DNA of 64,000 nt from Hemiscyllium ocellatum (taxonomy: Eukaryota). The stretch is from assembly GCF_020745735.1 (NCBI RefSeq), contig NC_083407.1, forward strand, positions 89,209,857 to 89,273,856. Reading direction: 5' to 3'. How positions within the stretch are numbered: the stretch's first letter is position 1; each line of letters begins with the position of its first letter. The notes beneath the pieces were generated by a model. That model ran no database searches and had not been told where the DNA came from. It was given only the letters and a program-made list of their open reading frames with translations. The position numbers were made by a program, and so were the translations under genes. Below, piece by piece: positions 4,294 through 62,406 of this stretch.

Positions 4294-4299
4294 TGACAG

Positions 4300-6311: not shown

Positions 6312-6733
6312 TTTAGAGCAGATACATTGGAGCTTTAGATCCCATAAGCTGCAAATGCCTCAAGCCTCAAGAAAGTTGGAAATAATCATCATTGAGGCAG
6401 GTCCAGCCTGGGTCTTGAACGATTTCTGTCTTATTGACTGTAGAAACTCCAAAGAACATCTGCAGTCGATGGTACTAGTAAGCCTTTGACAATGCTTCCT
6501 ACTTGACCTTGGAATTTCTTCCTTTTCAAATTACCGACTTGAATGATGATGGTGTCACCAAGATCACTGTGATCAAGTATTCTCCATGAAAACATCACTT
6601 ACCAGCACGATGTTGAACTATTTTAACGAGGACCCAATAATGAGTGAATTAGACAAGAGTGCGGTGTCATAAAGTTATTTTACTATTTTGACAAATAATT
6701 CAACAAAATAAATTCATGCATTAAAGTTGCAGA

Positions 6734-8040: not shown

Positions 8041-8095
8041 TTCCAGTTCAGATTTGGTTTAGTAACTGAAAATGTTAATGCTTCACAGAGCTTAG

Positions 8096-8149
8096 TATAT
8101 ATATGCTAGTCAGAAGTGCCTCACTGAGCATTTTTTTTGTTATTCAAAT
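8096..8149 (-). promoter_or_regulatory. Copy 1 proximal promoter: TATA, MARE-like TGCCTCACTGAGCA (8117-8130), Sox/octamer-like TTTTGTTATTCAAAT (8135-8149)
   Basis: Position and spacing conserved with the paralogues. Maf and SoxB1 sites are established regulators of gamma-crystallin promoters. Confidence 0.6.
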
Positions 8150-13286: not shown

Positions 13287-13415
13287 GATAGTTGCTATTA
13301 CAGCCCAAGTGTTGTCTTAATTCACCAGGTTTCATGAAGTACTGCTGGCCTCTCAGCCTTGCATGTTGTTGCCCTGACATGTTTGCATCGCTACCATTAC
13401 CAGCATTGTAGGAGC
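13287..13415 (-). pseudogene. Highly decayed gamma-crystallin exon 3 remnant, probably of copy 2
   Basis: 13320-13353 matches exon 3 of copy 3 at 29/34 nt (RGQQYFMKPGE vs [11 protein letters not shown]). Short matches to both exon ends at 13287 and 13404-13415. Large internal deletion. Confidence 0.6.
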
Positions 13416-13481
13416 TAACTTCTGTCAGTGAAGAGAGTACGAGAGCATGCTGGGAGTAGCACCAGTATTCAGCAGAGAAAC

Positions 13482-13505
13482 AGAGAGAGAGAGAGAGAGA
13501 GAGAG
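13482..13505. repeat. (AG)n microsatellite inside a decayed PLE terminal-repeat remnant
   Basis: About 12 AG units. Confidence 0.85.
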
Positions 13506-13745
13506 TGTTTTGATGAAAGGCCATTGATCTGAATCATTAAATCTGGTTTTGCTATGGATGTTGCCTGGCCTGCTGAGTTTTTCAGCACTTTCTTTTATTC
13601 TTAAGTCATAAGACCATTTTGCACTATCCCACAAGGTCAAAATTCATGTCTCACTGTTTTGTTTTCAAATGTTCTTGTGATTTCAGGTGCCCCATCAATC
13701 TATGGGTTGATGATTATAAGGTCAGCTGCAAGTTCTTCAACCACT

Positions 13746-14073
13746 GCATGGTGGCTCAGTGGTTAGCACTGTTGCCTCACAGCACCAAGGACTCAAGTTC
13801 AATTCCCCAGGAGATTGTGTGGACTTTGCACATTCTCCCCAAGTCTGCATGGGTTTCCTCTGGGTGTTCAAGTTTCCTCCCACAGTTCAAAGATGTGCCA
13901 GTTAGGTGAATTGGCCATGGTAAATTAACCATAGTATTCAGGCATATATAGGTTAGGTGCATTAGTCTGGGTAAATGTAAAGGAATGGGTCTGAGTGTGT
14001 CACTCTTCGGAGGGGTGGTGTGGACTTGTTGGGCCGAAGGGCCTGTTTCCACACTACAGGGATTCTATGATTC
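13746..14073 (+). mobile_element. HE1-like V-SINE
   Basis: GGTGGCTCAGTGGTTAGC head, V core GGGTTTCCTC...CCCACAG, tail GGGCCTGTTTCCACAC. Confidence 0.88.
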
Positions 14074-14789
14074 ACAAACAGATGTGCTAACGTATCTCAG
14101 GATTAATACAACTTCTGTATATTTCCAGTTCTCTGGATGAGGAACACGTAAACCTCAATGATCAGCAGCTCCAGAGTCATGGAAAGCGATTTCAGAAATG
14201 AGGATATGATGCAGAGGACTTTAGCTAGCAATCCCTGTTACATCTTACTCCAACTTTAGCTTTGGATTTTCGAACTTGATGTGTTGCACCAACAATTTTT
14301 TCATTCATGGAAATAGGTATCACTGGGCGCTTGCCAGCAATTATTGAACTGAATGGCTTGCTAGGCAATTGAGAGTCATCTATATTGATATGGGTCTGGA
14401 GTCACATGGAGGTCAGACCAGGTGAGGATGGCAGATTCCTTTTCCTCAAGGACATTAGTAAACCAGATGAGCTATTCCCGACAATGATTTCATGATCGTC
14501 AGTCAATTTTAATTCCAAATTTTTTTATCTTATTGAATTCAAATTCCACCATCTGCCTTGGTGGGATTCTAACTCTGGTCCCCAGAACATTAGCAGAGTT
14601 TCTGGAGTAATAGTCTTGCAATAACACCACGAGGCCATAGCCTCTCCTATTGTGGCACCCTATTTAGTCATAGAGCTGTACAGCACGGAAACAGACCCTT
14701 CGGTCCAACTCGTCCATGCTGACCAGACATCCTAAATTAACCTAGCCCGATTTGCGAGCATTTAGCTCATATCATTCTAAACCCTTCCT

Positions 14790-16071
14790 AAAAAAAAGCA
14801 ATATGGTTTTGTGCAGGGGAGAATGTGTCTTCCAACTTAATAGAGTTCTTTGAGGAAGTGGCCAAGTTGATAGATGAAGGAAGGGCTGTAGGTGTCATAT
14901 ACATGGACTTTAGTAAGGCATTTGATAAGGTTCCCCATGGTAAACAAACGGAGAAAGTGAAGTCATATGGTGTTAAGGGTGTTCTGGCTAGGTGGATAGC
15001 AAACTGGTTGAGCAACAGGAGACAGAGAGTAGTAGTTGAAGGGAGTTCCTTGAAATGGAGAAAGGTGATCAGTGGTGTTCCACAGGGATCAGTGCTGAGG
15101 CCACTGTTGTTTGTGAGATATATAAATGATCAGGAAGAGGGCACTGTTCATATGATCAGCAAATTTGCAGATGACACAAAGATTGGAGGAATAGCAGAAA
15201 GCATAGGGGACTGTCAAAAAATACAGGAGGATATAGATAGACTGGAGAGTTTGGCAGAGAAGTGGCAGAATGAGTTCAATCCTGGCAAATGTGAGGTGAT
15301 GCATTTTGGGAAGTCTAATTCCAGAGCAAACTATACAGTAAGTGGAAGTGCCTTGGGAAAAGTTGAGCAGAGATCTGGGAGTTCAGGTCCATTGCACCCT
15401 GAAGGTTGCTGCGCAGGTGGATAGAGTGATCAAGAAGGCATATGGTATGCTTGCCTTCGTTGGACGTGGTATTGAGTATAAGAGCTGGCAGTCATGTTAA
15501 AATTGTACAAGGCATTGGTTCGGCTGCATTTAGACTATTGTGTACATTTCTGGTCACCACATTACCAAAAGGATGTGGACGTTTTGGAGAGGATGTAGAG
15601 AAGGTTACGAGGATGTTGCCTTGTATGGAAGGTGCTAGCTATGAAGAGATGTTGAGTAGGTTAAGATTGTTTTCATTAGAAAAAAGAAGATTGAGGTCTA
15701 CAAAATCAAGAAGGGTATAGACAGGGTAGACAGAGGTAAGCTATTTTCCCAGGGTGAAAGATTCAATAACGAGAGGTCAAGCTTTCAAGGTGAAAGGTGA
15801 AAAGTTCAAGAGGAATACATGCGGCAAGTACTTTACACAGAGGGTGTGTAGGTGCCTGGGACATGTTGCCAGCCAAGGTAGTAGAGGCAGGCACGGTAGA
15901 TTCATTTCAGATGCGTCTTGACAGATGCATGAATAGGTTGGGAGCAGAGGGATACAGATGCTTAGGAATTGGGCGACAGGTTTAGACAGTGGATTTGGAT
16001 TGGCTCAGGCTTGGAGGGCCGAAGGACCTGCTCCTGGGTTGTAAATTTTCTTTGTTCTTTGTTATTTTGTT
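14790..16071 (+). mobile_element. 5'-truncated CR1 LINE, nested inside a minus-strand CR1 3' fragment (14667-14789 + 16072-16320)
   Basis: ORF 14825-15424 has YMDFSKAFDKVPH, SGVPQGS and KFADDTK; tail is (TTCTTTG)n-like. Host fragment rejoins across the insertion. Confidence 0.9.
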
Positions 16072-16954
16072 AATGTATGCATCCAGAAGCCTTGTAAGTG
16101 TTGTACAAGGCATCTGAATCCAGCCTCCACCACTTCCTTTGGCAGCTAATTCCAGACGGGCACCAGCCTTTGCGTGAAGAAGTTGCCCCTTATATACCTT
16201 TTATATCTTTTCCCTCTCACCCTAAACCTACGCCCTCTAGTTCTGGACTCCCCCACGCTAGGGAAATGATCTTCTTTATTTACCCTATCCATGCCCCTCC
16301 TGATTTTATAAATCTCAATAAGGCTCTAAGTTTTGCTGTCATTCCTTCGTTTATTCCATGAAAGTGATTTTTCTGTTTTTATTTTCTCTCGCACATTTGG
16401 CTACACTTTATTGCCTAACTACTTTTCAATTTTTTGATTTTAGATTTATTACAAAATAATCTAATATCTACCTGCTTTGCTCTCCTTTCCTCCACATCAG
16501 TTTGTACAAATGCCTCTGCTCATGGTTAATATACATTTAGTACTTTATTACTTGCATTCTTAAAATTAAAATTACATTTCCATATATAATGTGACTGACT
16601 ACAGTCCCTGCATATTATTTGCTCATGTTTTAAACAGAACTTTGTTAGAAACATCATAAGTTATAATAGCCTACAGCAAATATGTAAGTTGTAATTTGTC
16701 ATTTAGAAATAAAAGTGATGTTTCTTGTTTAGGAAAAACTATTTAAGACTTAGCAGTTTGAAATCCCAGCAAGTTTGTAATTACTCCTACATAAGGGCTC
16801 AAAAATAGAAATCTGATAGATGACAGATCTTTGGATAGTTTTCTTGTGCTACAAAGATACACGTTCTTTTGGAGCTGTGTGCACAGTGAAGCTTGGCTTA
16901 ATTTTTAAAAATTACTTTAACTTCTTTATGTCAGTTTTTATCAAAGGTAAGAGA

Positions 16955-18990: not shown

Positions 18991-19773
18991 CTTGACCATT
19001 AGTTTTGGATTGTCCCAGGGCTGAAAACATTATCTCCACGTATACTGTGTAGAATCCACATTTGTCCAACTATATTTCTGTATTTTATATAAAATCCATT
19101 GCTGCTATATACAATACATGTCACTTAGTATGTTAAGTGTAGATAATTGCATTCATAGAAACAAAACTATGAATCTTTATTACTGCTATAAATATAGTGA
19201 CAGGTAGCGTTATACCACATGCAAAGGCTGGGCTTTTAAGTGCAGATGGTACCCCAGTTGCTGGTCAAAGAATCAGAGGTATGTCCACTCTCACTGGCTG
19301 TAGAAACCACACCTCAATCCTTTCATGAGCAGCTTCATCATTGTCAACAGTCATAGCTTCTGTTCCTCTGAGACAATGTGTCCCTTTGCCAGTGGGAGCG
19401 GTAGCCACTGTAGATGGCCACAGGCAGACCAGAAGCCATCGAAGAGGCTCAGAGAGGCAAATATGTTCAAATGTTGGCAAGACCAGCCAGGCAGGCCATA
19501 GTGGGGTGAAGGTGAGTTGCAAGGGCAGAGGCATGGTCTACCAGCAGGGGAAGAACTTAAGGCTAGGGAACCTTAACTAGACCACACATTGACTGTGAGC
19601 AGGAAGCAAGCCAACTGAACCCATAGGGAAGGCAGCACATGGGGTGTATTTTAATGTGGAGACAGTTGGAAGAGGCCATCAAAATGTCTTTAACTGATAT
19701 TGCCCACTCTCCCACTGAATTGATAACCTTCCACTACCTGCTTCTTTCCAGGCTGATCATAACAAAGCTTTAG

Positions 19774-20003
19774 AGCTGAAAAATGTGTTGCTGGACAAGC
19801 GCAGCAGGTCAGGCAGCATCCAAGGAGCAGGAGAATCGACATTCCGGGCATAAGCCCTTCTTCAGGAATGCCATTCCTGAAGAAGGGCTTATGCCCGAAA
19901 CGTCGATTCTCCTGCTCCTTGGATGCTGCCTGACCTGCTGCGCTTTTCCAGCAACACATTTTTCAGCTCTGATCGCCAGCATCTGCAGTCCTCACTTTCT
20001 CCT
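19774..20003. mobile_element. PLE-derived palindromic mini-element with 14-bp TSD
   Basis: About 99-bp inverted arms (19772-19870 / 19872-19970). TSD TAACAAAGCTTTAG at 19760-19773 and 20004-20017. Confidence 0.9.
19873..19908 (+). ncRNA. Minimal type I hammerhead ribozyme motif (PLE-associated)
   Basis: CTGAAGA-A-GGGC(TTAT)GCCC-GAAA-CG-TC: complete core, 4-bp helix II, palindromic ACGT in place of helix III. Predicted cleavage after C19904. Helix I is weak. Confidence 0.7.
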
Positions 20004-20128: not shown

Positions 20129-20463
20129 CTGTGGGTAAGAGCGACATGACCTGACACAGTCATTGAATCCCATCCAGCGCTGGTAGTCAGGATACTCTCC
20201 CCTGGTCAGAACATACTGGTATCCCATGTAATTGGGTTTCTCATACAGCACCCACCAGTCACTCTCAACACGGATGGAGTTACAGCGGCTGAAGTAAGGG
20301 GACAGGTCGGCACAATCACTACTGCACTCATAGTGCCGCCCCTGGAAGTTCCTGTCTGTGGAAAGATATTTTGCTGCAAGTTAATCATTTCTCTAGCCAG
20401 TTGATCCTTGAGGACGAAATCAAATGAAATGCAAAAACACAGAGTTATCCCCGCCTTTTCTAT
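20129..20463 (-). pseudogene. gamma-crystallin copy 2 pseudogene (exon1 20455-20463, exon2 20129-20355)
   Basis: Start ATG->ATA, TATAAATA->TACAAATA (20523-20530), degenerate donor GCGGGG, and a 16-bp frameshifting deletion at the exon 2 start (227 bp instead of 243). The rest of exon 2 is near-identical to the paralogues. Confidence 0.92.
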
Positions 20464-23400
20464 TTTGAATTTACAGTTGGTTTATTAACTGACTGAATAT
20501 TACACTGCTTCACAGAGCTTGGTATTTGTACAGACTGGGCAAAAATGCCTCATTGTGCTGTACTTTGCTATTCCAATAATTCAATCCTGAAAAATCAGCT
20601 GAATTCACAAGATGCATGTTGTATTGATGGTAGTTAAACACTTCAAAGACATTTCATGTGTTTTGATTATTTTCCATTTGTCTTCATGTCACTTTAATGG
20701 TTGTTGGAAATGTTGTCTGAAACAGTCCTACCTCCTAAATTGCCCAGATCTCTTTAGTGTAATCACCTGTTCCCAAATGGTAAAGATGAGGCCATGGATA
20801 TCCAGAGAATCTAACTTTGGAAATGATCATTTCCATTCCTAGTTGATACATAATTGTAAGGGGATTTATTTCCTAGATTCTTCAATCATCTATTCCCAAA
20901 ACCTGTCATGTAGTGATATCATGTATGGCATTAATCTGCTGATATTGATATTATGAGTGATGGGTATTGACGCAACTTGCACACGATACGTGTTTCATGC
21001 AGTCCAACCAGAGTCCTGCATACAAATGTACTGGATTGATTTGAATTAAAATTTAGAGACAACTAAGAATAAATATGGGAACAGGTAAGATAACAATAGA
21101 AAGTTAAGCTGTCAAGTGACAGAATTAAAACAAACTTTTTAGCTATATTTATCTGTGGGTAACAGAATGAACGTCTCATGCTATTGACAATATGTAAGAC
21201 AATGTTAAAACACACACACACACTCATGCTCTGTAAGCCAATGTATTATTTACTCTTGTGTCACATTAATCATTTTGAAACATGTGTCTGTGCTTTTATT
21301 TTTCTCTGTTATTTTCTCTGGCTATGGTAAAGTCATTGTGCTCTGGTCTAGTCTTCTAGTGATAGAATGAAACATTGAAGAAGAGCACCCTGATTGAGGA
21401 ACTGAATAATGAACATGAGGACATGAAGGCAAGATTGGAAGGCAAAGACAAGCCAAAGGTTTTTGCTAAAAGCCTGTAAAGTAATTTTAAGCTGTGTTGG
21501 AGCTGTCAGTGATCCGTGCCCCATTGTTTCTGTAACAATAAATATGTCTTCTTCACTCAAACATTGGAGATTAGAGGTAATTCCCATATAGCCGCCTGTG
21601 TTTCTTCAAGCATAACATTGAAAAGGATGACCAGAGAAAATAATGGCTGCATACAGAATAGTGATACAATTAAAAGCCAACTAAATTGGCTGAAAATAGA
21701 TGAAAATCTAAATGGTACATTGTCATCGCTGGGAAATGGTTTACAAAAAGACATCAAAAGTAAACTCACTGAAGATGGATAGAACAGCTTTGCCAACTGC
21801 TCTAAAGACATATCAGGAAATCTGAGGGTGGATTGATCATGTGGCATAGATTCTGACTCATGGGATTTGTCAGCAGCCAGTGACATTATGTGAATCTGTA
21901 CTATTGTTAAATAATAACATGGTTGTAAACATTGAGATCATTTAGACTAAGTGAAGAGGTTTTATAAATAGAAAGTTAAACATCAGGAAATAGCTGGCTA
22001 GGACAAAAAAAACTGGATAGATGGAAAACATCAGAAATTGGACAAAGGGAGGAAAGATACTGGTGTGCAGCAACACAATGAACAAAGAGAAATCCCCTCA
22101 TGGAAAATTGTTAATTATTGTTAGACCCCAAGGCCAATATGTTCAGAGAAATAACTTGGAAAAAGTGAGATTGTTTAGTTTTCGTAGTATGCACACTTTC
22201 ACTTAAATATCACTGTTTTGCATCCCTGTAGGGTAAACAAAGACCCAAACAACTAACTTTATTGAATGACCACCAACAGAAGGAATTACCAATGCCTTTT
22301 ATAATATTGACTTTATTGTTGAATAGGAACAAACATGGATCAAGTATGGATTATCAAGCAAATGATACTTTGTAAAAAAAACATACAACAATAGATTTCA
22401 TCTCCAGGTTTGGTCATGATTGTCATCACCAGGATAAGAATTTGACAGTCCTGACAGTTATACTATCTGGAGTTCCTTTCCAACCAACCAACCAACAATC
22501 TGACCCCAATTCACAGTTTGGTCACTCCTGTGGAAACACTTAACTCTTTAGAATCTTTGAGCTGTTCCACATTGGGCACAATTTAAGCCAGTTCATGCAT
22601 TGTGTCTAAAAACCTCCTTTTCATTTCCTGTCAAATATTAAAATTTGCTCATTTCCTGAGAGAAATTTATTTCTGCTCCTCACAAGAATTTTGAATATGT
22701 TCCTCTTTCTGTCTTTCTCTGCTTTCTCTTTGTGTGTGCATATGTATACTGATTGTCTTCTTTATCTAATGCAACTGTTTTTTTTTAACAGCAATAACTT
22801 CTTTGTTTTCTTCTCTATGTCTAGTTGTATGGCTTTTGTATCTTAACTTCCCATTGGTCTTGGTCACCAGGTTTCATGGAGCAGTATTTCTGAAGAAAAT
22901 TGTAATTGATCTATTTACAATTGATGCAACTACCTAAAAGTAATTTCCAAATGTTGTTAAAAACAATTATAGATTCCATCAACTATTTAAATAAGTTATA
23001 ATTTTTTTTATTTTCACCAGCAGTCACTATAATTATCACAGGGAAATCTTTCTTTTATTTCAGCAATCTAATGCAATTTCAAAACTGTGAATTTTACATT
23101 GACAATTGTAGCTGTGATTATTTGGCAACAAACAATCACTGGATTTGACCGATATATTCAAAATTTCGTATAAATTGGGAAAGGTGGCTGAGGCAAATGG
23201 TTAAAAACAGATAAGGCTTATTTATTATTAAAGCTGAAATAAACTAATAAACTTGACAATATGAAAAATTGCACCAATATGTCATAGCCACAAAAAGCAG
23301 GACAACTTAAATCTGATCAATTACCACTCCATCACAATCCTCTCAATCCTCAGCAGAGTAATGGAAACTGCTGTTGACAGTACCCTCAGGTGGCACTTTC

Positions 23401-24689: not shown

Positions 24690-25398
24690 TAGGAGAAAGT
24701 GAGGACTGCAGACGCTGGAGATCAGAACTGAAAATGTGTTGCTGGAAAAGCGCAGCAAGTCAGGCAGCATCCAAGGAGCAGGAGAATCGACGTTTCGGAC
24801 ATGAGCCCTTCTTCAGGAATGAGGAAGGTGTGCCAAGCAGGCTAAGATAAAAAGTATGGAGGAGGGACTTGGGGGAGGGGCATTTGAAATGCGACAGGTG
24901 GAAGGAGGTAAAGGTGAGGGTGATAGTAGTCGTACGGAGTAGTTGGGTTGATTGGTCCGGGTGTCCCAGAAGACCTCTGGGACACCCGGACCAATCAACC
25001 CAATCACCCCGTGGCTCAACACTTCAACTCCCCCTCCCACTCCACCAAGGACATGCAGGTCCTTGGACTCCTCCATCGCCAGACCATAGCAACACGACAG
25101 CTGGAGGAAGAGCGCCTTATCTTCCGCCAAGGAACCCTCCAACCACAAGGGATGAACTCAGATTTCTCCAGTTTCCTCATTTCCCCTTCCCCCACCTTGT
25201 CTCAGTCCCAACCCTCGAACTCAGCACCACCTTTCTAACCTGCAATCTTCTTCCCGACTTCTCCGCCCCCACCCCCACTCTGACCTATCATCCTCACCTT
25301 TACCTCCTTCCAGAAGAAGGGCTAATGAAATGTTGATTCTTCTGCTCCTTGGATGCTGTCTGACCTGCTGCGCTTTTCCAGCAACAATTTTCAGCTCC
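24690..25398. mobile_element. Truncated PLE: inverted 5' repeat + GIY-YIG C-terminus + 3' repeat, 11-bp TSD
   Basis: HPVAQHFNSPSHS...EEERLIFRQGTLQPQGMN (24948-25238). TSD TGACTTTAATC at 24679-24689 and 25399-25409. Confidence 0.9.
24785..24820 (-). ncRNA. Minimal hammerhead ribozyme motif (PLE repeat)
   Basis: Minus strand reads CTGAAGA-A-GGGC(TCAT)GTCC-GAAA-CGTC; core intact, helix II has a G-U pair. Confidence 0.62.
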
Positions 25399-27649: not shown

Positions 27650-27776
27650 GGGAGAAAGTGAGGACTGCAGAAGCTGGAGATCAGAGCTGAAAATGTGTTG
27701 CTGGAAAGGCGCAGCAGGTCAGGCACATCCAAAGAGCAGGAGAATCGATGTTTCGGGCACAAGCCCTTCTTCAGGA
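27650..27776 (-). mobile_element. Solo PLE terminal repeat with hammerhead-like core, within an old CR1 remnant
   Basis: Minus strand reads CTGAAGAAGGGCTTGTGCCCGAAACATC...CTGCAGTCCTCACTTTCTCC. Confidence 0.85.
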
Positions 27777-39303: not shown

Positions 39304-42157
39304 CTAGAAATCCCTCATGCACCTGAAAGATCCAACAGTTGAGCTGTAGCCTCCCCAGTCACTGTATCTCCTGTATTCACCGGGTCTCATGAAGTACTGT
39401 TGCTCTCTGTAGTTGGGATGTTCATAGAAGATCCAGTGACCATCCATCACATGCCAGAAATGGATGTCACGGTAACGGAAACGATCGTAGACAGATGGAC
39501 AGTCATCCATGAATTCCATCATCTGTCCTCCAAATTCAGGCCTCTCATAACTCCTCATTCTCTGGGAGTCTCCTCAGTACTGGAATACAAACAAAATATA
39601 AGAGTATAAGAGTTAGGAGCAGAAGTCGGCCATCTTTCTCTTCAGGCAAACTTTATCATTAAATGCGATCTTAGCTGACATTCTACTTCACCACCATTTT
39701 GCTGATGCTTTTAATATGTGAAAATCAGTCAATTTCAGTCTTGAATAAACACAGTAAGTGAGGTTCCACAGACATCTGCGGCAAATAATTTAAAAGGTTC
39801 ACCAATATCTGAATGAGGAAAATCCTCCATATATCAATGGTTATGGCTTGCTCCATATTCAGAGACTGTGTCTTCTGTTTCTAGACTCCCCAGCCAGTGG
39901 AAATTTCCTTCCAGCATGTACTTTGATGATTACTGTAGGAATTTTCTATGCTTGAATTAGTTCACATTTCGTTCTCTAAACTTTACAGAATGTAGACACA
40001 GTCTATTTAATCTTTCCTCATAAGACAATCCCACTATCACAGGAATTAATTTTGTAAGCATGAGTTGTGATCGCCTCTATGCAAAGTATGTCTTTCCTTA
40101 GGTAAGGAGACCAAAACTGCATGCAATACTCCACATGTGGCCTCACCCTGTTTCTACGCATATACAGAAAGATATCCTTGATTCTGTACTCGTAATAAGT
40201 CTATATATCATTTGACGTTCTGACTGGTTACTGTAACTTCAAATTAATGTTCACTGACTGAAATAATCTTGAACTCACAGGAACAGTTGAAATTCAACAC
40301 TTCCCAGTCTTACACCAGTTAAGAAACACTCTGTGCTACTATTTTTTTCCCACATTCCTTCAGGAAAACCTAATATTTCTCCAGATTGTATTCCATTTGA
40401 CAATTTCTTGCCTTTCCACTTGTCCAAATACACCTGAAGCGTTTTTGCAGCGTCTTTGGTTCCCACCAGTTATGTGTCATATCCAAACTTGGAAATGTTA
40501 CAGGTTATCTTCATACAAAAATCATCAAAATACGGTTGGAAGTGCTGAGACCCAAGCACTCATCTTTGGTCTGCCTCATTAACCACAGCATGTCACTCAG
40601 AAAATGGCTAATTTATTTCTACCGTCCGCTTTTTGTCTTCAACATTCTTCAGTCCATGACAGTATATTTTCACCATTCCCATGTGATCTTGTTTTGTTGG
40701 CCAATCTCTGACATGGGACTTTATGGATAGCCTTCTAATAATGTAATATACCAAACCCAGTTTTTTCCCTTTGTTCTCTTTTACTGAATTTCAACTGCTC
40801 CTGATCTCAAATGCTCCGAGTTAAAACCAGAAAGCAATAACTATACTAACTTGCATCAATAGTTCCTAGCCAATAGCCTCTTAATCTAAACCTACATTCA
40901 AAATGTCCAATCCAATAATATCCTTTCTAGATCAAAACATGTATTTAATATGATCAGCTCCAGTTGTGAATGTGTAGTATATTTGAACTGATCTAAGTAG
41001 ACAATGTGGAAGTGTGAATGATTATCAGAAACAAATAACATGAAGAAAATATATTTCAGGAAAAGCTATATGAGTGTACAAGGGCTAAAAAAATAGAAAA
41101 GACCAAGTTAGATGAATAGATGCAGAGAAATATTCATGTGCGATGTGTCCATAACATCTGAATACACTTATGCAGCTGAATGGCCCATTTGGGTGAATTC
41201 AATTCAATTTAAATAAGTTATTTAATCATAGTCAGATGCTCATAGACATTAACTAATGGTATTTCTGAGGCACAAATGTAATTGGTGCCAATTTTGTTCC
41301 CAGAATTACAAATGGATAGGGCACATCATAACAATCACAATTAAGCACACACAAGTGGATTAGACTGCGAATGGGGGAACCCAAAGTTATGTAAAGATTG
41401 CAAAGGGTTCAGTTCACAAAGACCATGGATTCGGACAGACATCCCAATATTATTTTAGCACAACTGGCAGTATTTCCTCAAAATAATCTCCTGTCGCACA
41501 GTGTTTAGTCATCTAAGAATCTATCATAATCCCGTTTGCTTGGTGGTAACTGAAATGTAACCATAGGCCACTCACTTACATTTAAAGTAATTCAACTTTG
41601 TTTGTCATGGTGACCAACAATGCCTAAACATTGACTTCAGACAATTTCAAGATGCAATTGTTCAAATTGCTATCAGTCAGCTACATGTTTTCACTGTTAT
41701 TGCTAATGAGAAGTGTGAAGAAGGGAAAAACATCCCCAAATGTAACAGCTTTGCTCAATGGCAATTTTTAAGACCTCAATCTGTGATGACAACACAAACA
41801 TGTAACTTACATATAGGTAGGAGTGACATGATCTGACACAGTCATTGAATCCCATCCAGTGCTGGTAGTCAGGATACTCTCCCCTGGTCAGAACATACTG
41901 GTATCCCATGTAATTGGGTTTCTCATACAGCACCCACCAGTCACTCTCAACACGGATGGAGTTACAGCAGCTGAAGTAAGGGGACAGGTCAGCACAGTCA
42001 CTGCTGCACTCATAGTGCCATCCCTGAAAGTTCCTGTCCTTGTAAAAGATGATCTGTGAAATGGCACAAAATAAATTAATGAGCTTGAAAATCAAAATGT
42101 AATGTGAAAAACATCTAGCATCATGTATAAAATTAGACTTGTTCTTACCTTTCCCAT
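39304..42157 (-). pseudogene. gamma-crystallin copy 4, premature stop R86* (exon1 42149-42157, exon2 41811-42053, exon3 39304-39579)
   Basis: Splice sites, TATA (42218-42225) and AATAAA (39249-39254) are intact. Second codon of exon 3 is TGA (39574-39576; CGA in copies 1 and 3). Many CpG-transition missense changes (E8K, R15W, R32C, R68H, R80H). Confidence 0.9.
39600..40740 (-). mobile_element. Old CR1 remnant in intron 2 of copy 4
   Basis: Decayed EYCMQFWSPYLRK and SYEE-type sequence and CR1-like 3' end. Confidence 0.7.
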
Positions 42158-44512: not shown

Positions 44513-45869
44513 ACAGTTGAACATTTGAACAGTGCATTTACTTTACCAACACCTTCCACCCTGACCGCAAATTTACCTGGACCATCTCAGACTCCTCCCT
44601 CCCCTTCCTAGACCTTTCCATTTCTATCTCAGGCAATCGAATCAACACGGACATTTACTATAAACCGACTGACTCCCACAGTTACCTAGACTACACCTCA
44701 TCCCGCCCTGTCCCCTGTAAAAACGCCATCCCAAATTCCCAATTCCTTCGTCTCTGCTGCATCTGCTCCCAGGAGGATCAGTTCCAATACCGTACAACCC
44801 AGATGGCCTCCTTCTTCAAAGACCACAATTTCCCCCAGACGCGATCGACGATGCCCTCCACCGCATCTCCTCCACTTCCCGCTCCTCTGCCCTTGAGCTC
44901 TGCCCCTCCAATCGCCACCAGGACAGAACCCCACTGGTCCTCACCTATCACCTCACCAACTTCCATATACATCGTATCATCCGTCGTCATTTCCGCCACC
45001 TCCAAACGGACCCCACCACCAGGGATATATTTCCCTCTCCTCCCCTATCAGCATTCCGTAAAGACCAACTCCCTCCGTGACTCCCTCGTCAGGTCCACAC
45101 CCCCCACCAACCCAACCTCCATTCCCGGCACCTTCCCCTGCAACCGCTAGAAATGCAAAACTTGTGCCCACACCTCCCCCCTTACTTCCCTCCAAGGCCC
45201 CAAGGGATCCTTCCATATCCACCACAAATTCACCTGCACCTCCACACACATCATTTACTGCATCCGCTGCACCCGATGTGGCCTCCTCTATATTGGGGAG
45301 ACAGGCCACCTACTTGCGGAAGTTTTCAGAGAACACACTGGGACACCCGGACCAACAAACCCAACCACCCCTTGGCTCAACACTTCAACTCCCCCTCCCA
45401 CTCCACCAAGGACATGCAGGTCCTTGGACTCCTCCATCGCCAGACCAGAGCAACACGACGGCTGGAGGAAGAGCGCCTCATCTTCCGCCTAGGAACCCTC
45501 CAACCACAAGGGATGAACTCAGATTTCTCCAGTTTCTTCATTTCCCCTCCCCCCACCTTGTCTCAGTCAAATCCCTCGAACTCAGCACAGCCTTCCTAAC
45601 CTGCAATCTTCTTCCTGACCTCTCCGCCCCCGCCCCCACTCCAGCCTAGCACCCTCACCTTGACCTCCTTCCACCTATCACATTTCCAACACCCCTCCCC
45701 CAAGTCCCTCACGCTTACCTGTTGGGCACACTTTCCTCATTCCTGAAAAAGGGCTCATGCCCGAAACGTCGACTCTCCTGCTCCTTGGATGCTGCCTGAC
45801 CTGCTGCGCTTTTCCAGTAACACATTTTCAGCTCTGATCTCCAGCATTTGGAGTCCTCACTTTCTCCTC
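44513..45869 (+). mobile_element. 5'-truncated Penelope-like element (RT C-terminus, GIY-YIG endonuclease, pLTR)
   Basis: LPFLDL, YYKPTDSHSYLDY, IIYCIRCTRCGLLYIGETG (GIY-YIG), HFNSPSH. TSD AATCGA at 44507-44512 and 45871-45876. Confidence 0.93.
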
Positions 45870-49161: not shown

Positions 49162-52100
49162 CTAGAAATCCCTCATGCGCCTGAAAGACCCGATAGTTGA
49201 GCTGTAGCCTCCCCAGTCACTGTATCTCCTGTATTCACCGGGTCTCATGAAATACTGGCGCCCTCTGTAGTTGGGATGTTCATAGAAAATCCAGTAACCG
49301 TCCATCACATGGCAGGAGTGGATGTCACGGTAACGGAAACGATCGTAGACAGATGGACAGTCATCCATGAATTCCATCATCTGCCCTCCAAAGTCAGGCC
49401 TCTCATAAATCCTCATTCTGTAGGACCCTCCTTGGTACTGCAATAGAAATGAGATTATGTTAGTGATGAAATGTGTAAGAAAGTAACTGGCTGGTTAGAA
49501 GGGATCATTTGAAGGAACTTTTGATTAATATTGAGAGTAAAGCTGAGATAACTCAATGTCATGTCCAGGACATTTGGATTGAATTCTCACCTGATTATCA
49601 CTGGGCTTCCGTGTGTACATTTGTAGGATGTAAAGGAAATGGTGATCACAGTGAATGTAAGGCTAATGTATTTGACTCATGTAGACTGTAGGCTTCATAA
49701 ACTTAATAAAATTCCATTTTATTTTGTTCTGATTAAGATTATTCCATTCCTATAGATGGATGACTGTGATGATGCCGGAGTCTGGGGTGGACAAAGTCAG
49801 AAGGCACACGGCACCAGGTTTTAGATTAGATTACTTACAGTGTGGAAACAGGCCCTTCGGCCCAACAAGTCCACACCGACCCGCCGAAGCGCAACCCACC
49901 CATACCCCGACATTTACCCCTTACCCAACACTACGGGCAATTTAGCATGGCCAATTCACCTGACCCGCACATCTTTGGACTGTGGGAGGAAACCGGAGCA
50001 CCCGGAGGAAACCCACGCAGACACGGGGAGAACGTGCAAACTCCACACAGTCAGTCGCCTGAGTCGGGAATTGAACCCGGGTCTCAGGCGCTGTGAGGCA
50101 GCAGTGCTAACCACTGTGCCACCGTGCCGCCCATAGGTTATTGTAACTTCACCGGACAAGGGAGCAGCGCAACAAGAGCTTGTGATTTTAAATTTACCTG
50201 TTGGAATATAACTTGGTGTCATGTGACTTCTGACTTTATAGATGGATAACGCAGGAATCAGAATTCACACAACCTGACTATTTCACTTCCCAGGCCTTTT
50301 TGTGGAATCAGCACATCTCAAATTTTAATTATTTTGTTGAGCATTTTTGTATTCGCTATATATGTAGACTCGAGGTATAAGAGCAACTTAACAGATGATG
50401 GGATGACGGAATGGGATGACAGTTCACTCAACTGTCTCTGTGATGGTCTGGAATATATCAGTCTGATCTGCTTTGTGAGGAATGGGAATAGTTTACCGGG
50501 ACAATAACCAGGGTGACTTGGAAACAACAGATTTGAGAGAAACAGGTGGAAGTATATAATAACAGATGATGGATGCAGATAGGTGCTAGAATTACATACC
50601 ATGAGGACTGAATAGACTTATGGGTTTTTCTGTATTATAAACTCTATATTAATCACAGATAGATTATACTGGTTTTTACATGTTAAAGATCCATTCATAT
50701 TTTGGGTCCATCCTCATAGACAGTTGGCACCAACTAAGTGGACCTTCACTGGCCTGAATGTGACTCTGACAAAGATGCATTTTATACACAGCCACCCTCA
50801 GATGGCAGTTGGCATTTTTGAAGGGCGCAGGATGACAGCTAAAGCAGACACCAGGTATTGGAAAGATAGAGGGGTGCCGTGGTGGTGGTGGTTGGCGGGG
50901 GGGAGGTGGGAGTAGAGAAAATGCCAAAACGCCATCACAATGACTGCGGATTAAGGCCAGCACACCTTTTTCTTCCGAGTCCAACAACAACAACTTTCAT
51001 CAAAGCATTACTGTTCTTCAGTTGTCACAACGGCCATGTAAGAATCGATTACAGTCCATCTTTGCTTGTTAGCTCCTCACTTGCATTTCATACAGATATT
51101 TGATAGTTACAACACCAACGGAGGCCATTTGGCCAATCATATCCATTGCCAGCTCTCTGTGAGCCTTTTGCCTTTTGATAGTTAGCCAGTTCCACAATGA
51201 AACTGCTTTAATCTGCCTGCACCACACTCTGAAGTAGTGCAATTAGATCTTAATTGCTGTGTAAAAATATTTTCCTTGTCTCACCATTGTTCCTTTTAAC
51301 AATTCAGTTTGTATTGGCATTCTCTGGTTTGTCACAATTACACCAATGAGAGCAGCTTCTCCCTACTTTAATCTTTCCTGGCCACCTTTTGGTGTTGAAC
51401 ACCTCTTTCAAGTCGCCACATGGAGTTTCTTTATTCTAAGGGGAACAATCCCAACTTCTCCAATCTCTTCTTCCCCCAACTCTCAACTTCCTCTGCCACT
51501 TTCAACCTACTCACTTACCTCCCACTCCCTCTGCCAAGGCACCCTATTTTGGAAAAGTATTCATTATTTTATATTGCCCCTCCTCATTCCTTCCACTGAA
51601 ATGCATCATTTTGCACTTTTCAGGTAGTTCATTCTGGATTTCATCTGCGATGTGTCCAACCTTTACACCAGCCTGTGTAGTTGGAAATCCATCACTTGCT
51701 CTGCACAGGTCTCATTACTTCCAAGTTTTGTGTCATCTGTAAATTTTGAAATTGTGCCCTGCACACCCAAGACTTAGTCACTAAAATATAAATCAAGAAA
51801 AGCAGTGTACCTTCATGATTGGGAAACCCAAACTTACACTTTTCTCCAATCCAAGTGTAAGGTTGACCAGACTCTTTGTTTCAGGTTATTCAATCATGTC
51901 AAGTGAAACAACCTTTGTATTAGATGGCCACCAGGAATGCCTGAAACACTTCCAAATGCCATTTAAACTGAAAGAAATTCCAGTTTCTACTGTACTGATT
52001 TGGGCATGTATGAAATTGACTGCATAGTTTTACTGTTATTACAAATACTTGATGTGTTAAACACAATAACATCCTCAAGTTTAGTTGCTTAGCTCAATGA

Positions 52101-52497
52101 GCATTTCCTTGATCTCAGTCTGAACAGAATGCATAAACATCCAACTTACTTGTGGGTAGGAGCGACATGACCTGACACAGTCATTGAATCCCATCCAGCG
52201 CTGGTAGTCAGGATACTCTCCCCTGGTCAGAACATACTGGTATCCCATGTAATTGGGTTTCTCATACAGCACCCACCAGTCACTGTCAACACGGATTGAG
52301 TTACAGCGGCTGAAGTAAGGGGACAGGTCGGCACAGTCACTGCTGCACTCATAGTGCCGCCCCTGGAAGTTCCTGTCCTCGTAAAAGATGATCTGTGGAG
52401 AGACACAAGAGATGTTTATGAGCTTGATAATCAAAGTGTAATACTTAAAAAACTATAGCATCATACAAAAAATCAGACTTGTCCTTACCTTTCCCAT
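49162..52497 (-). CDS. cryg: gamma-crystallin copy 5, intact, 175 aa; join complement(49162..49437,52150..52392,52489..52497)
   Basis: Canonical exons with GT-AG introns, TATAAATA at 52556-52563, AATAAA at 49107-49112. Linker reads YPQ|YQGGS. Confidence 0.95.
49762..50236. mobile_element. Third-family PLE inverted-repeat element with 11-bp TSD in intron 2 of copy 5, with nested SINE
   Basis: AAAGTCAGAAG.CAC...CACCAGGTT vs AACTTGGTG...GTGACTTCTGACTTT. TSD TATAGATGGAT at 49751-49761 and 50237-50247. Related repeat at about 36505-36600. Confidence 0.75.
49822..50132 (-). mobile_element. Young full-length HE1-like V-SINE
   Basis: GGGCGGCACGGTGGCACAGTGGTTAGC head, B box GGTTCAATTCC, V core, CR1-like tail with (TAATC)n. 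Confidence 0.93.
51105..51830 (-). mobile_element. Old CR1 remnant in intron 2 of copy 5
   Basis: Minus strand [12 protein letters not shown] plus CR1-like 3' end. Confidence 0.65.
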
Positions 52498-53924: not shown

Positions 53925-55075
53925 AAGTCATCACGTGATATAGAAACAGGCCCTTTGAATCAACTCATCCATGCTGACCAGGTTTCCTGAACTGAACTAA
54001 TACCATTTGCCTGTGCTTGGGCCTTATCTCTCTAAATCTTTCCTATCCATGTCCCTGTCCAAGTGTCTTATAAACGCTGTCATTGTACCAGTTTCCACCA
54101 CTTCCTCCGGCAGCTCTTTCCATACATGCACCACCCTCTGCGTGAAAATGTTGCCCCTTAGGTCCCTTTTAAATCTTGTCTCTCTCGCCTTAAACCTATG
54201 CCTTCTAGTTTCAGAGTCCCCTACCCCGGGGAAAAGACCTTGGCAATTCACCTTATCAATGCCCCTCATTATTTGATAAACTTCTAAAAGGTCATCCCTC
54301 AGCCTCCTACACTCCAGGGAAAAAGTCCCAGCCTACCTAGCCTGTCCCTATAATATAAACCTTCCAGTCTCAGTAACAGAGCTGAAAATGTGTTGCTGGA
54401 AAAGCGCAGCAGGTCAGACAGTATCCAAGGAACAGGAGATTCGATGTTTCAGGCATAAGCCCTTCTTCAGGAATGTCCAGTCTTCCTGAAGAAGGGCTTA
54501 TGCCTGAAATATCGAATCTCCTGTTCCTTGGATGCTGCCTGACCTTCTACGCTTTTCCAGCAACACATTTTCAACTCTGATCTCCAGCATCTGCAGATCT
54601 CACTTTTTCCAGTCTCAGTAACATCCTTGCTCATCTTTTTTCATTCTTTCCAGTTTAATAACATTCTTCCTTTTGCAGAGCAATCAGAATTATAATTAGT
54701 ACTGTGAATGCTGCCTCACCAATGTCTTGTACATTGGCAACATGGTTTCCCAAGTCCTATACTCAGTGTTCTGACCGATGAAGGCAAGTGTGCTAAACGC
54801 TTTCCTCCCCACGCTGTCTAACTGTGACTCCACTTTCAAGGAACTGGGCTCATCTTGTCAAATTCTGGCCCCTCACTCATGGCTGTGATGATACAAATAT
54901 CTCTGCCAGGGGTCCCATAATTTCTTCCCTCACTCCCCACAATATCATGGGATACACATAATCATGTTCTGGGGACCTATCTACCCTCATGCTTTTCACG
55001 ACCTCCAGCCCCTCCTCTTCTGCAATGTGAATTCTTTTCGAGACATCATTATTTATTTCCCTGAGTTCCATTTTA
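53925..55075 (-). mobile_element. CR1 LINE, internally deleted, interrupted by a PLE palindrome
   Basis: ORFs 54024-54269 and 54877-55071. Confidence 0.88.
54379..54606. mobile_element. PLE-derived palindromic mini-element with 17-bp TSD
   Basis: About 95-bp inverted arms. TSD TTCCAGTCTCAGTAACA at 54362-54378 and 54607-54623. Confidence 0.9.
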
Positions 55076-57003: not shown

Positions 57004-58188
57004 CTCAGTTGTAATGGACCCATATCATTGGCAATATCAGAAACAAAGCAGCTCATCAGTCATGTGATCATTCAGCAGTCACAGCACACAAAATAACATT
57101 CAATCAACATCCTCCAAACACTGGGGCATGAGTGAGTCTAACACAGTGGGATACCTCCACTTGGACATTACACATTATGACACTGATTCAGATGTCTTTT
57201 GCTCAAGTCTTTTGGCGCACATGCAAAGAGAGGTTTTATCTCTGGCAGCAATTCTGAGGTTCTGTACCATACCCCCAACTCCTTAATTAACCACAAAATG
57301 CAGTGTGGCATGCAGAATAACAGTGTGGAGGTTTTACGGTCTGAGTGAAGTGAACAGCTCCTGTGTCTCGTGCAGTTTATAGGACCTTGGAAGGTGATTG
57401 CTAATTTGGCAACTAGAGTGAATATTTCCTAGTCACAAATCATTGTTAATGCCTCTCAACCAACAGCAGGATTGATTCATGATGTTGAATGATGTGGTCA
57501 ACAGTGTTTATGGCCAAGACTTTTACTTGACACAGTCAGAAAAGATGCTTGGCTCACACTCAGCATTTTGTGTCTTTCACCTTCACTGAGTGGGTATGTA
57601 CTTAATGCGATTGTCCTTTGAAGGGTCTTGCATCATATGAAAGAGAAACCTCTCCCTTAGAGAATGAAGCACTTAATCTGCCCATTCTGGGTGTGATGCT
57701 AGTCAATTTTTTCTCCATTACACACTCACTGTTTGGATAAGGGTAGGAGGCAACACAGGGCACAAATCTTCAAACCCAGCTTTGATCTCCATCACATTCC
57801 CACGCGACCAATCTGTTTAACTTACCACTTTATCACCAGATCACCCCCTCCATGCAGCTCCATGAAGAAATGATCTACGATAACTGACATTCAAAGAAAA
57901 CATATTTTATTCGTGCTCAGAAATGCTTGAGCAATTTTTTTAAAAAATCATAGTTTTTAGCAACAGTCTAGAAATTCCAACAGTTGAATTGTAGCCTCCC
58001 CAGTCGCTCTATTTCCTGTATTCACCGGGCCTCATGAAGTACTGTCGCCGTCTATAGTCAGGGTGTTCATAGAAGATCCAGTAACCGTCCATCACATGGC
58101 AGGAGTGGATGTCACAGTAACAGAAACGGTCGTAAACAGACGGACAGTCATCCATGAATTCCATCATCTGTCCTCTAAAGTCAGGCCT

Positions 58189-58911
58189 TGTTCTATGAAG
58201 AAACAACACAAAAAATTTACAACCCAGGAACAGGCCCTTCAGCCCTCCAAGCCTGAGCCAGTCCAACTCCACTGTCTAAACCCATTGGCTAATTCCTATG
58301 GATCTGTATCCCTCTGCTCCCCACCTACTCATGCATCTGCCCAGACACATCTTAAATTAATCTACCATGCCTGCCTCTACCACTCAGATAACAAGGTGTT
58401 CCAGTCATCTACCACTCTCTGAGTACCAAATACTTGCTGCATGTATCCCACTTAAACTTTTTGCCTCTCACCTTGAACACATGACCTCTCTTTACTGAAT
58501 CCCTCACACTGGGAAAACGCTTATTTCTATCCAACTTGTCTATACCCTTCATGATTTTGTGGACCTCAATCAGGTCCCCCCTCAACCTCCTTTTTTCTAA
58601 TGAAAACAAACCTAACCTACTCAACCTCTCTTCATAGCTAGCACCTTCCATTCCAGGCAACGTCCTCGTAAACCTTCTCTGAACCCTCTCCGAAGCATCC
58701 ACATCCTTTTGGTAATGCGGTGACCAGAACTGTACACAGTATTCTAAATGCGGCTGAACCAAAGTCGTGACCAATTTTAACATGACCTGCTAGCTCTTAT
58801 ACCCAATACCCCATCTGATGAAGGCAAGCATACCATATGCCTTCCTGACCACTCTATCCACCTGTGCAGCCACCTTCAGAGTACAATGGACTTGAACTCC
58901 CAGATCTCTAG
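58189..58911 (-). mobile_element. 5'-truncated CR1 inserted in exon 3 of copy 6
   Basis: ORF 58409-58783 GMEGASYEERLSRLGLFSLEKRRLRG, same subfamily as 14790-16071. Crystallin sequence on both sides. Confidence 0.92.
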
Positions 58912-60517
58912 TTTGTAGGAGCCTCCTCAGTAGTGGAATATAAGAATGCTATTGGTAACTCATTTTTGTAATTATATGTTCAGTAATGTCATTCTGACTG
59001 CTTGAACACCATCAATTGTAATCACGCCACTATTAGTCACAATGCTATCAGCAACCTGGTTCCAAAGCCTTCTTTGGAGTCTCATTGCTCTTTCTACTTA
59101 AAGCCTATGTTCTTGACTTGCATCTTGTCCTAATATCTCCTCTGTGCTCCATGTCTAATTCTGCCTTAAAACACTCCTGTGAATCACCCTGACCATTTTA
59201 TTACCTTATAGGTGTCATATAAATATCAGCTATTAGATGATCTGATTTGAAAATCAGTAGCCGAAATCAGAATCCAGAGGAAGAATTGGATTCAAAGTAA
59301 CTTTAAAAGAGACATTGGGATTAGAACAGTTAGATGGTTGTTTTTGACCAACACAGACTTGATTGGCCAAAGGGACTTTTTCTGTGCTGTAGACCTCTAT
59401 GGCTCTATGATTTTATGTCATGGAGCTGATCTGTAGAGCTTTGGGGCAAAAGCAAAGGTAAGGAGGGAACTTGGATTTGACTTTCAGAAATCCATTGGAG
59501 GCACATTTCATCAAGTCTGAATGGCCTCCTTCTATGCAGCAAGAGTTTACATATCCATAATAATTAAACACTTTGCTGTATGCAGTGATATGGTCTGCAT
59601 CCTCAATCAGTTATTAACTTGGTGAGTCGATTTGAAGATTTGTCCGAAGAGAGTTTGAATTGAAAATCATGTTACAGCAGGATACCTCCATCTCAAGGAC
59701 ATTCAGATCAGGGCACATCATCAAAGGAAAGATAATATTGGCCTTGAATGAAATATAGTGAAAATTCAGCACAGATGTTGGGGGTAAGAGGATTAAATTC
59801 AGAGGGCTGCTATTCCATTTAACATAGAAGCTTAAAGTGCTTTTAGAAAGTATTTCCTCTGGTGGGGGATTCCAGAATAAGAATTGGGCCACACAGATCA
59901 GACCAAGAAGAACCTTTCAATAGAATATTCAGCAAAAATCTGAAACTGGATCACACAATAGGTTATTGAGTCTCGGTCAATCGAAAATTTCAAAACTGAG
60001 TTGATATTCTTTTGCTAGGTAAGGTCATGAAAGGCACTGGGACCAACTGGAGAAATAAAGATTTGAAAAAGATCAACTATAATTTGCTTAAAAGTTAGAT
60101 TGAATTTGAGGGGCAGGCCAGCCCCTTCCAGTTTTTTTATGCTCCCATGCTCTCACAAGGACAAACTGTCAAACTATAACTGACCTGTGGGTAGGAGCGA
60201 CATAACCTGACACAGTCATTGAATCCCATCCAGCGCTGGTAGTCAGGATACTCTCCCCTGGTCAGAACATACTGGTATCCCATGTAATTGGGTTTCTCAT
60301 ACAGCACCCACCAGTCACTGTCAACACGGATGGAGTTACAGCGGCTGAAGTAAGGGGACAGGTCGGCACAGTCACTGCTGCACTCATAGTGCCGCCCCTG
60401 GAAGTCGCACTTGGTGTTGTGGTGCAATGGTAACAAACTCTCTCTCTATGTCAGCAAAACTAAAGAACTGATGATTGACTTCAAAAAAAAAGGAGAACAC
60501 GCCTCCATCTGCATCAA

Positions 60518-60836
60518 GGTGGCATGGTGGCTCAGTGGTTAGCATTGCTGTCTCATCGCGCCAGGAACCCATGTTCGGTTCCTGCCTCGGGTGACTGCTT
60601 GTGTGGAGTTTGCACATTCTCCCTGTGTCTGCATGGGTTTCCTCCAGGTGCTCCAGTTTCCTCTCATAATCCACAGATGTGCTGGTCAGGTGAATTGTCC
60701 ATGCTAAATTTGCCATCGTGTTACATGCATTAGTTGGGGGTAAATGTGGGTCTGGGTGGGTTACTCTACGGGGGATTGGTGTGGACTTGTTGGGCCAAAT
60801 GGATTGTTTCCACAATGTAGGGAATCTAATCTAATC
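60518..60836 (+). mobile_element. HE1-like V-SINE nested in Rex1
   Basis: Head, V core, (CTAAT)n tail. Confidence 0.9.
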
Positions 60837-61123
60837 AAAGGAGCTGAAGATGAGAGGATTGAACGTGCAAACTCCTACGAGTGACGATAACCGACAACCT
60901 GTCCTGGACTTCCCATGTAGATGCAATGGTCAAGAAGGCACAACAACACCTCTTCTTCCTCAGGTGGCTCCGAAAATTTGGCATGTCCATAAGGACCCAC
61001 ACCAACATTTATGGATGAACCATTGAAAGCATACTGTATGGGTGCATAATAGCCTTGTACAACAATTCTCTGCCTAGGATTTAAGAAACGGCAGAAGGTT
61101 GTGCGCATAGCCCATACCATCAT

Positions 61124-61439
61124 TAGATTAGATTAGATTACTTACAGTGTGGATACAGGCCCTTTGGCCCAACAAGTCCACACCGACCCGCTGAAGCGAA
61201 ACCCACCCATACCCCTACATTACCCCTTTACCTAACACTACGGGCAATTTAGCATGGCCAATTCACCTGACCCGCACATCTTTGGACTGTGGGAGGAAAC
61301 CGGAGCACCCGGAGGAAACCCACGCAGACACGGGGAGAACGTGCAAACTCCACACAGTCAGTCGCCTGAGTCGGGAATTGAACCCGGGTCTCAGGCTCTG
61401 TGAGGCAGCAGTGCTAACCACTGTACCACCGTGCCGCCC
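61124..61439 (-). mobile_element. Young HE1-like V-SINE nested in Rex1
   Basis: Near-identical to 49822-50132; TSD ACCATCAT/ACAATCAT. Confidence 0.92.
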
Positions 61440-62406
61440 ACAATCATGGAAGCCAACCTTCCATCCATGCATTCTATTTATATGTCTTGTTACCGCAGAA
61501 AGGCTGCCAACATCATCAAAGACCCATCCCAACTCAGTAATGCTTTCGACAACCTCCTCTGTCAGGCAGACGATACAGAAACTAGAACACGTGCAGCAAT
61601 AGATTCAAGAACAGCTTCTTCTCTGCTGTTATTAGATGGATGAATGGACTCTCTAACTTCAAATCATGCTGATCTCATTAATGTTTATCTTGCCTAGTGC
61701 ACATCCTGTGCAGTGTAACCTTACACTGTTCAAGATTTTTTACACCCTAACATCTGTATGTCCTTGCTTACTATGATCTGCCTGTACTGTTCGCAAACAA
61801 AGCTTTTCACTGTAATTAAGTACACATGGCAATAAATCAAAAGAAATCAAATCAAATCATAGTGCCGACCCTGGAAGTTCCTGTCAAACATGATCTAAAA
61901 AAAACAGAAGTTTAAAAATCAATTTCTTAAAATAAGACATAATTAGCAAATTATTTTAATGTAACAAAATATAAGTTTACCTTATCATTCCCATTTTTGA
62001 ACTCACAGTTAGCTTAATACATTACTTCACACAGATTGGTATTAACTGAACACATTTGCTTTGGCAATGCTTTGTCATTGTAATATTTCAGGACTCAAAA
62101 TCAGCAAAAATGAACAAAACATGTGTTGTGTTCACGGTAGAAAACACCTGAAACATATAATGTCCTAACCATTCTTTCCCTTTTTGCTTGCGTTGCATGA
62201 ACAGGAAAGGGAAAATGGGTGCTTTACTTTTCCTGCATCAGACTCCATTTTATTGTTGAAATATTTCAGTAAAGTCACTAAATTCTATTTGTGACATTGC
62301 ATTGTGCCTCCAAAAACACTCAAATGTGGGACAAAGAAAGTCGACTGCAAGTTATGTTGCTTTCGCTGTTCCAACCATTCAGCTTTACACTTAGCTGTAA
62401 AACCAA

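Follow-up and report, generated by a model that had tools for sequence, protein, structure and literature searches.

How does a gene that has been dead for a long time keep one piece of exon that looks as if it belonged to a living gene? The question is raised by the gamma-crystallin array of the shark Hemiscyllium ocellatum, in a stretch of 64,000 nucleotides of contig NC_083407.1 (assembly GCF_020745735.1, positions 89,209,857 to 89,273,856 of the forward strand), which we refer to as the window. The sixth gamma-crystallin copy of the window, copy 6, has its exon 2 split by a long interspersed nuclear element (LINE) into a long piece of 221 bp, which is nearly identical to exon 2 of the intact copy 5, and a short piece of 37 bp, which is decaying, as is exon 3. 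The best explanation, to which we give a probability of roughly 0.75, is that the long piece was overwritten by non-allelic (interlocus) gene conversion after the LINE had inserted; that conversion reached this dead gene at all, whatever the order of events, we regard as highly probable.

A disabled gamma-crystallin copy with one fresh exon piece

Using a 23-base exon probe and BLAST, we found exon 2 of gamma-crystallin six times in the window, in tandem and on the minus strand (Table 1). Its minus-strand translation corresponds to the first two Greek-key motifs of gamma-crystallin, and in copies 1, 3, 4, 5 and 6 exon 2 is followed 0.7-2.7 kb downstream by an exon 3 homologue. For copy 5, the translations of exon 2 and exon 3, each compared with database proteins separately and not as a spliced join, are identical to XP_060684021.1, a gamma-crystallin S-1-like protein of H. 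ocellatum, and PF00030 is carried by the proteins that were matched by the open frame at 49165-49494, the query for exon 3 of copy 5. Greek-key exons 2 and 3, together with PF00030 on the relatives, identify a three-exon beta/gamma-crystallin family. Across the array, similarity between paralogues stops 5-15 bp past the exon borders and the introns cannot be aligned.

Copy 6 is an unprocessed pseudogene, with introns 1 and 2 present and its coding sequence disabled. Six of its lesions are clear: the TATA box is gone, exon 1 has gained 5 bp, the LINE interrupts exon 2, and exon 3 has lost 32 bp at one place and 19 bp at another and has acquired a TAG stop codon. Two further ones are likely, an in-frame loss of 6 bp from the short piece and a repeat situated 9 bp from the acceptor of exon 3. 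The first-pass annotation of this DNA, which had counted at least eight inactivating lesions and judged the gene long dead, thus gave a fair tally, and the great age that it assumed is supported by the data below; it had also described a 38-bp short piece with a 6-bp deletion and substitutions, of which the lesions are indeed present, while the length is 37 bp.

Of the 221 positions of the long piece exactly 3 differ from copy 5, and all six family CpGs are retained, just as had been read at first pass; from copy 2 the piece differs at 5 positions. Among ten shark exon 2 sequences it carries a single private substitution (1/221), a C>T change within 60199-60207 that is non-synonymous (Ser>Leu). 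In exon 3 of the same copy the private substitutions number 16/225 when nine sequences are compared, or 18/206 when only the in-window copies are, and the difference from the long piece is marked in both comparisons (Fisher p = 2e-4 and 1.7e-5, respectively); the terminal maximum-likelihood branches of copy 6 measure 0.0047 substitutions per site for the long piece vs 0.1035 for exon 3. Within its 37 bp the short piece shows 2 substitutions and 1 indel, vs one event in the 221 bp of the long piece (p = 0.01). The conversion signal was judged throughout by Fisher and Poisson tests on exon-length segments, most members of the array lying outside the window.

Copy 4 (39304-42053) serves as an internal control for these comparisons, being a structurally complete pseudogene with a CGA>TGA change at the second codon of exon 3. 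Its private changes, almost all of them C>T or G>A and often at CpG, are spread evenly over 7/221 positions of exon 2 and 8/225 of exon 3 (~3.3% each, p = 1), and it therefore seems to have escaped recent conversion. Over the same 221 bp copy 4 keeps one CpG of six, compared with six of six in the long piece of copy 6, 2/14 in the older and 15/18 in the younger of two short interspersed nuclear elements (SINEs) that are nested in the LINE.

The long piece thus has the look of a conversion acceptor: it is far less diverged than the adjacent sequence of the same copy, and paralogues of high identity (copies 5 and 2) lie in cis. Its similarity to copy 5 extends over 60178-60405 at most, and past the exon and a further 7-15 bp no paralogue matches copy 6. 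A motif of the copy 1/2 type stands in the 5' untranslated region of copy 6, while its exon piece falls with copy 5; the flanks are too diverged for a supported tree. Copy 2 is likewise dead, with ATG>ATA and a 16-bp deletion that opens exon 2 (gene stretch 20130-20560), and no match to its exon 3 was found in the window; its fresh exon 2 shows the same process elsewhere in the array.

Table 1. Features of the gamma-crystallin array discussed in the text, in window coordinates (TSD, target-site duplication; LTR, long terminal repeat)
Feature	Position	Strand	Remarks
Exon 2, copies 1-6	7.7, 20.2, 30.3, 41.9, 52.2, 60.2 kb (plus-strand coordinates)	-	read on the minus strand
Copy 2 exon 2	20130..20356	-	dead, like copy 6, with exon 2 still fresh; 2 private substitutions, 6/6 CpGs
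Copy 4 exon 2	41811..42053	-	dead-copy internal control; 7/221 private, 5/6 CpGs lost
Copy 5 exon 2	52150..52392	-	intact gene; nearest in-window relative of the copy 6 long piece, 3 differences
Copy 6 exon 3 remnant	57968..58192	-	32-bp and 19-bp deletions (frameshifting), TAC>TAG within 58006-58014, 5/8 CpGs kept
Interspersed repeat	58201..58909	.	9 bp from copy 6 exon 3 acceptor; 83% to a copy at 15369-16060
Copy 6 exon 2, long piece	60185..60405	-	exon positions 23-243; putative converted tract
TSD, long-side copy	60385..60405	.	GGG CGG on the gene strand
Non-LTR retrotransposon, 3' fragment	60406..61857	+	1452 bp, 5'-truncated, antisense to the gene, splits exon 2
LINE letters within the insert	60406-60515, 60839-61125, 61443-61857	+	
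Older nested SINE	60516..60838	+	tRNA-derived; 21.9% from young-copy majority; 2/14 CpGs kept
Younger nested SINE	61126..61442	-	tRNA-derived; 2.9% from young-copy majority; 15/18 CpGs kept
Copy 6 exon 2, short piece	61858..61894	-	37 bp, holds the second TSD copy; 6-bp deletion, 2 substitutions
Copy 6 exon 1 remnant	61981..61994	-	5-bp insertion, frameshift
Copy 6 TATA-region remnant	62038..62048	-	TATA box lost

Among the remaining copies, the exons are open and the signals normal in 3 and 5, and copy 1 has open exons with a GC donor in place of GT after exon 1, at ~8020-8035 (ATGGGAAAG, followed directly by GCAAGG); the GC after exon 1 is common to copies 1 and 2. Short fold-back repeats, 88-91% alike and found in both orientations, lie at 19772-20002, 24692-24821, 27651-27776, 45738-45867 and 54377-54610; they form one family, dispersed across the array, which was flagged at first pass as Penelope mini-elements. 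From 63230 to the window end at 64000 runs a plus-strand frame, long and open, with motifs like those of reverse transcriptase, which belongs to a different and apparently younger retroelement.

The insertion in exon 2 and its age

The insert resembles a non-LTR retrotransposon in its C-terminal coding part and 3' end, the reverse transcriptase core being absent, and shows frame changes, stops and an (AAATC)-like tail. The name Rex1 that the first-pass annotation gave to it stays tentative, a review of Rex elements having offered no diagnostic feature for such a fragment. It is flanked by 21 bp of duplicated exon sequence (60385-60405 and 61858-61878), and this duplication, the 5' truncation and the element-specific 3' tail are the marks of target-primed reverse transcription; given the 21-bp duplication, the insertion is a real retrotransposition and not a misjoin. 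The two copies of the duplication differ at one base, which on the gene strand is G on the long side, in agreement with copies 2 and 5, and T on the short side (GGT CGG). Both this mismatch and the history of a frameshifted LINE that later received two SINEs had been described in the first-pass annotation, and both are borne out. As evidence of conversion, the mismatch was considered and rejected, because the site is A, G or T among the copies and either history fits.

Each of the nested SINEs carries its own short flanking duplications inside the LINE. No second copy of the LINE was found in the 64-kb window, and a related copy in Chiloscyllium punctatum (locus L001) is 76-80% identical and runs unbroken across the site of the older SINE. 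Distance and CpG statistics of the nested SINEs were computed without positions 60590-60643. The SINEs of the window comprise a young class, 95-97% alike, and old copies that are 79-82% identical to the young ones and 66-80% among themselves; since the old copies are nearer to the young ones than to one another, their decay has been star-like and independent. Triplet distances among the old copies give at least 13% of decay in the old nested SINE since its insertion.

An older assembly of C. punctatum gave three loci for comparison, L002, which is collinear with, and orthologous only to, positions 3-16375 of the window, and L001 and L003, which lie beyond the window end. The non-coding p-distance between L002 and the window is 5.0-5.4%, or ~2.6% per lineage. 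The expected copy 6 site in that assembly falls in a 63.6-kb stretch, and no annotated protein was found within 10 kb of it. An old-class SINE occupies an orthologous site in both genera, and therefore the old class predates the genus split; we infer that the nested old SINE, and with it the LINE that holds it, probably predate the split between Hemiscyllium and Chiloscyllium.

With these dates, a neutral block of 221 bp should have gathered ~6 changes after the two genera parted and 19-29 in the time since the gene died, and one is seen. The probability of at most one change in 221 bp is 0.02 at a divergence of 2.6%, 9e-8 at 8.7% and 1e-11 at 13%. Taken together, the internal clocks (exon 3, the nested SINEs and the per-lineage divergence of 2.6%) therefore exclude the neutral persistence of the long piece.

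Gene conversion and the rival explanations

The course of events that we favor would be as follows. The exons of the tandem array would be homogenised by non-allelic gene conversion, copy 6 being an old pseudogene member of it, and a non-LTR retrotransposon would have entered exon 2 of copy 6 by target-primed reverse transcription before the two genera parted. Later, after the arrival of the young SINE, the 221-bp part of the exon would have been overwritten, at least once and recently, from a copy-5-type paralogue, a break presumably being repaired by homology-directed copying. The tract would be bounded where homology stops, at the LINE junction on one side and a few bases into intron 2 on the other, the latter because the paralogue introns are unalignable. 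The 37-bp piece beyond the LINE would be too short as a recombination substrate and so left to decay, and exon 3, with its two deletions, would decay likewise. The minimal efficient processing segment reported for mouse cells is >200 bp (reviewed in PMC3966225), a length that the piece of 221-228 bp would exceed and the 37-bp piece would not. No single donor of the long piece stands out, copy 5 differing from it at 3 sites and a C. punctatum copy outside the window at 4.

This scheme agrees in part with the first-pass annotation, which had the long segment repeatedly overwritten by functional paralogues, with the LINE bounding the tract and with pseudo-exons as possible donors to the array. 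Copying from a paralogue after the insertion is also our best reading, though one event after the young SINE suffices and repetition need not be invoked. The bounding role given to the LINE is plausible, a decaying 37 bp beside a fresh 221 bp being what a limit on homology length would produce. The idea of donation found no support, the private base of copy 6 being seen in no other copy.

Several points weigh against the conversion reading. The insertion and the history of exon 2 are read from copy 6 of H. ocellatum alone, and the 221-bp sequence is known from the assembly alone. The long piece equals the family consensus plus one change and has no derived base in common with a particular donor, and so the timing of the event is read purely from the lack of decay. 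The contrast between the short and long pieces amounts to 3 events, the LINE is dated only via its nested SINEs, which could have come with a composite source element, and the 228 bp of homology come close to the shortest substrates that are reported to recombine efficiently in mammals.

Some of these points lend weight to a different order of events, in which copy 6 was killed by lesions in exon 3 and in the promoter, exon 2 continued to be converted over its full length, and only recently did the LINE insert, as a composite transcript with both SINEs already on board, bounding nothing. We consider this unlikely. The indirect dating of the LINE, whose sole other copy seen is 76-80% identical, the single mismatch in the 21 bp of the target-site duplication, and the three events behind the short-side contrast all leave room for it, but the 6-bp deletion and 2 substitutions in the 37 bp of the short piece stand against 1 change in 221 bp (p = 0.01). 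Each SINE, moreover, has its own flanking duplications within the LINE, the C. punctatum LINE copy is continuous across the old SINE site, the old-class SINEs are older than the genus split, and retrotransposition of decayed composite elements is rare. A purely technical origin, with reads from paralogous exon 2 copies overwriting a decayed pseudo-exon in the consensus during assembly or polishing, is rather less likely again: the long piece does equal the family consensus at every base but one, yet that private base was kept, the piece joins a unique LINE junction and a unique intron unbroken, and the 7 private changes of the decayed copy 4 exon 2 survived in the same assembly. In eight sequencing runs of the same species, drawn from two studies, 56-71% of the words sampled from a 4.4-kb stretch are present, and the exon is not singled out in them; for two other organisms the shares are 0.29 and 0.20. 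All of these values agree with a stretch that is real and old, but the latter two, which would fit presence of the whole stretch there and do not tell its parts apart, are not counted as evidence.

Nor does function offer a better account. A 99-codon open frame (60137-60436) spans the long piece and its splice donor GT is intact, as would suit a transcript exon or DNA-level element kept by purifying selection, but the listed start of this frame is TTG, with no in-frame ATG upstream of the crystallin part, and a protein word search with it gave no matching shark protein in the collection. The sole private change alters an amino acid, the promoter, exon 1 and exon 3 are wrecked, and the synonymous sites and all CpGs are also unchanged, which selection does not explain; taken together, the untouched silent sites, the non-synonymous change, the lack of a start codon and the state of the gene make selection an improbable cause. 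Least probable of all is that no conversion took place and that copy 6 was inactivated recently in slowly changing shark DNA. Elasmobranch substitution rates are low, as this would require, but all the clocks used here run at the same locus (7-9% private change in exon 3 and 3.3% in copy 4, with 22% for the older nested SINE and 2.9% for the younger), and a slow rate cannot leave one block of 221 bp 20 times younger than its neighbours. With neutral decay excluded and selection unlikely, copying from a paralogue remains as the biological explanation.

The array of C. punctatum offers observations of its own. Exon 3 of its copy 1 orthologue (L002:9464-9739) has 11 differences from copy 1 of H. 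ocellatum and groups with a paralogue of its own species (L003:11994-12269), from which it has 3, a pattern that suggests exon-limited conversion in exon 3 of C. punctatum since the genus split. A further C. punctatum gene, just past the window start (copy 0, L002:17221-19735), aligns with copy 1 (6094-8598) through the introns at 14% divergence, and the duplication that gave copies 0 and 1 is, judging by this alignment, much younger than those that parted the other copies.

Significance and comparison with known systems

The copy 6 locus is a tidy example of a known process and calls for no new mechanism. What it offers is one dead gene that combines a refreshed block with two decaying ones and with three insertions that can be dated, and for this reason copying can be separated from selection as well as from a slow clock with no need of external calibration. 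It indicates that conversion in this shark array follows sequence homology and not gene function, and it hints at the length of homology that conversion requires; for annotators, it means that an intact-looking exon in such arrays is not the same as a live gene. A further proposal, that the exon 2 pieces of dead copies 2 and 6 are systematically kept by conversion and feed variants to the lens genes, and that the split exon brackets the minimal germ-line homology between 37 and ~228 bp, strikes us as doubtful; if true, the exon pieces of dead copies would form a variant reservoir for the working lens genes.

The nearest parallel is the gamma-crystallin cluster of the rat, which den Dunnen et al. 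reportedly described in 1986 as evolving in concert by exon-wise gene conversion. That cluster too is a tandem family of three-exon genes in which exons are similar, introns and flanks have diverged, and exons 2 and 3 have different histories. The shark acceptor differs from it in being a fragment of a dead copy that is split by a retrotransposon. Insertions are also known to end conversion tracts between the duplicated genes of globin duplication units, where, similarly, an inserted element breaks the homology and marks the edge of the homogenised block. In the shark, however, the insertion splits a single exon into parts of 221 and 37 bp, which lie above and below the usual minimal homology and have met different fates.

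Conversion between a crystallin gene and a pseudogene is known from human CRYBB2 and CRYBB2P1 (PMC3554465, PMC3966225), which resemble the present case in that non-allelic conversion joins a crystallin gene and a pseudogene of one cluster. In the human case it is the pseudogene that donates, and disease results, whereas the copy 6 piece would be an acceptor, from which no donation was seen. CYP21A1P and CYP21A2 form another converting pair of a pseudogene and its functional paralogue (PMC3966225); here as well a dead copy is held near a live one by copying in cis, in tracts of a few hundred bases. Unlike CYP21A1P, copy 6 keeps a single exon fragment while the rest decays, and so provides a neutral control within the same pseudogene. 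That pseudogenes are kept similar by conversion, and that insertions end conversion tracts, are thus already established ideas, and copy 6 brings the two together in one exon.

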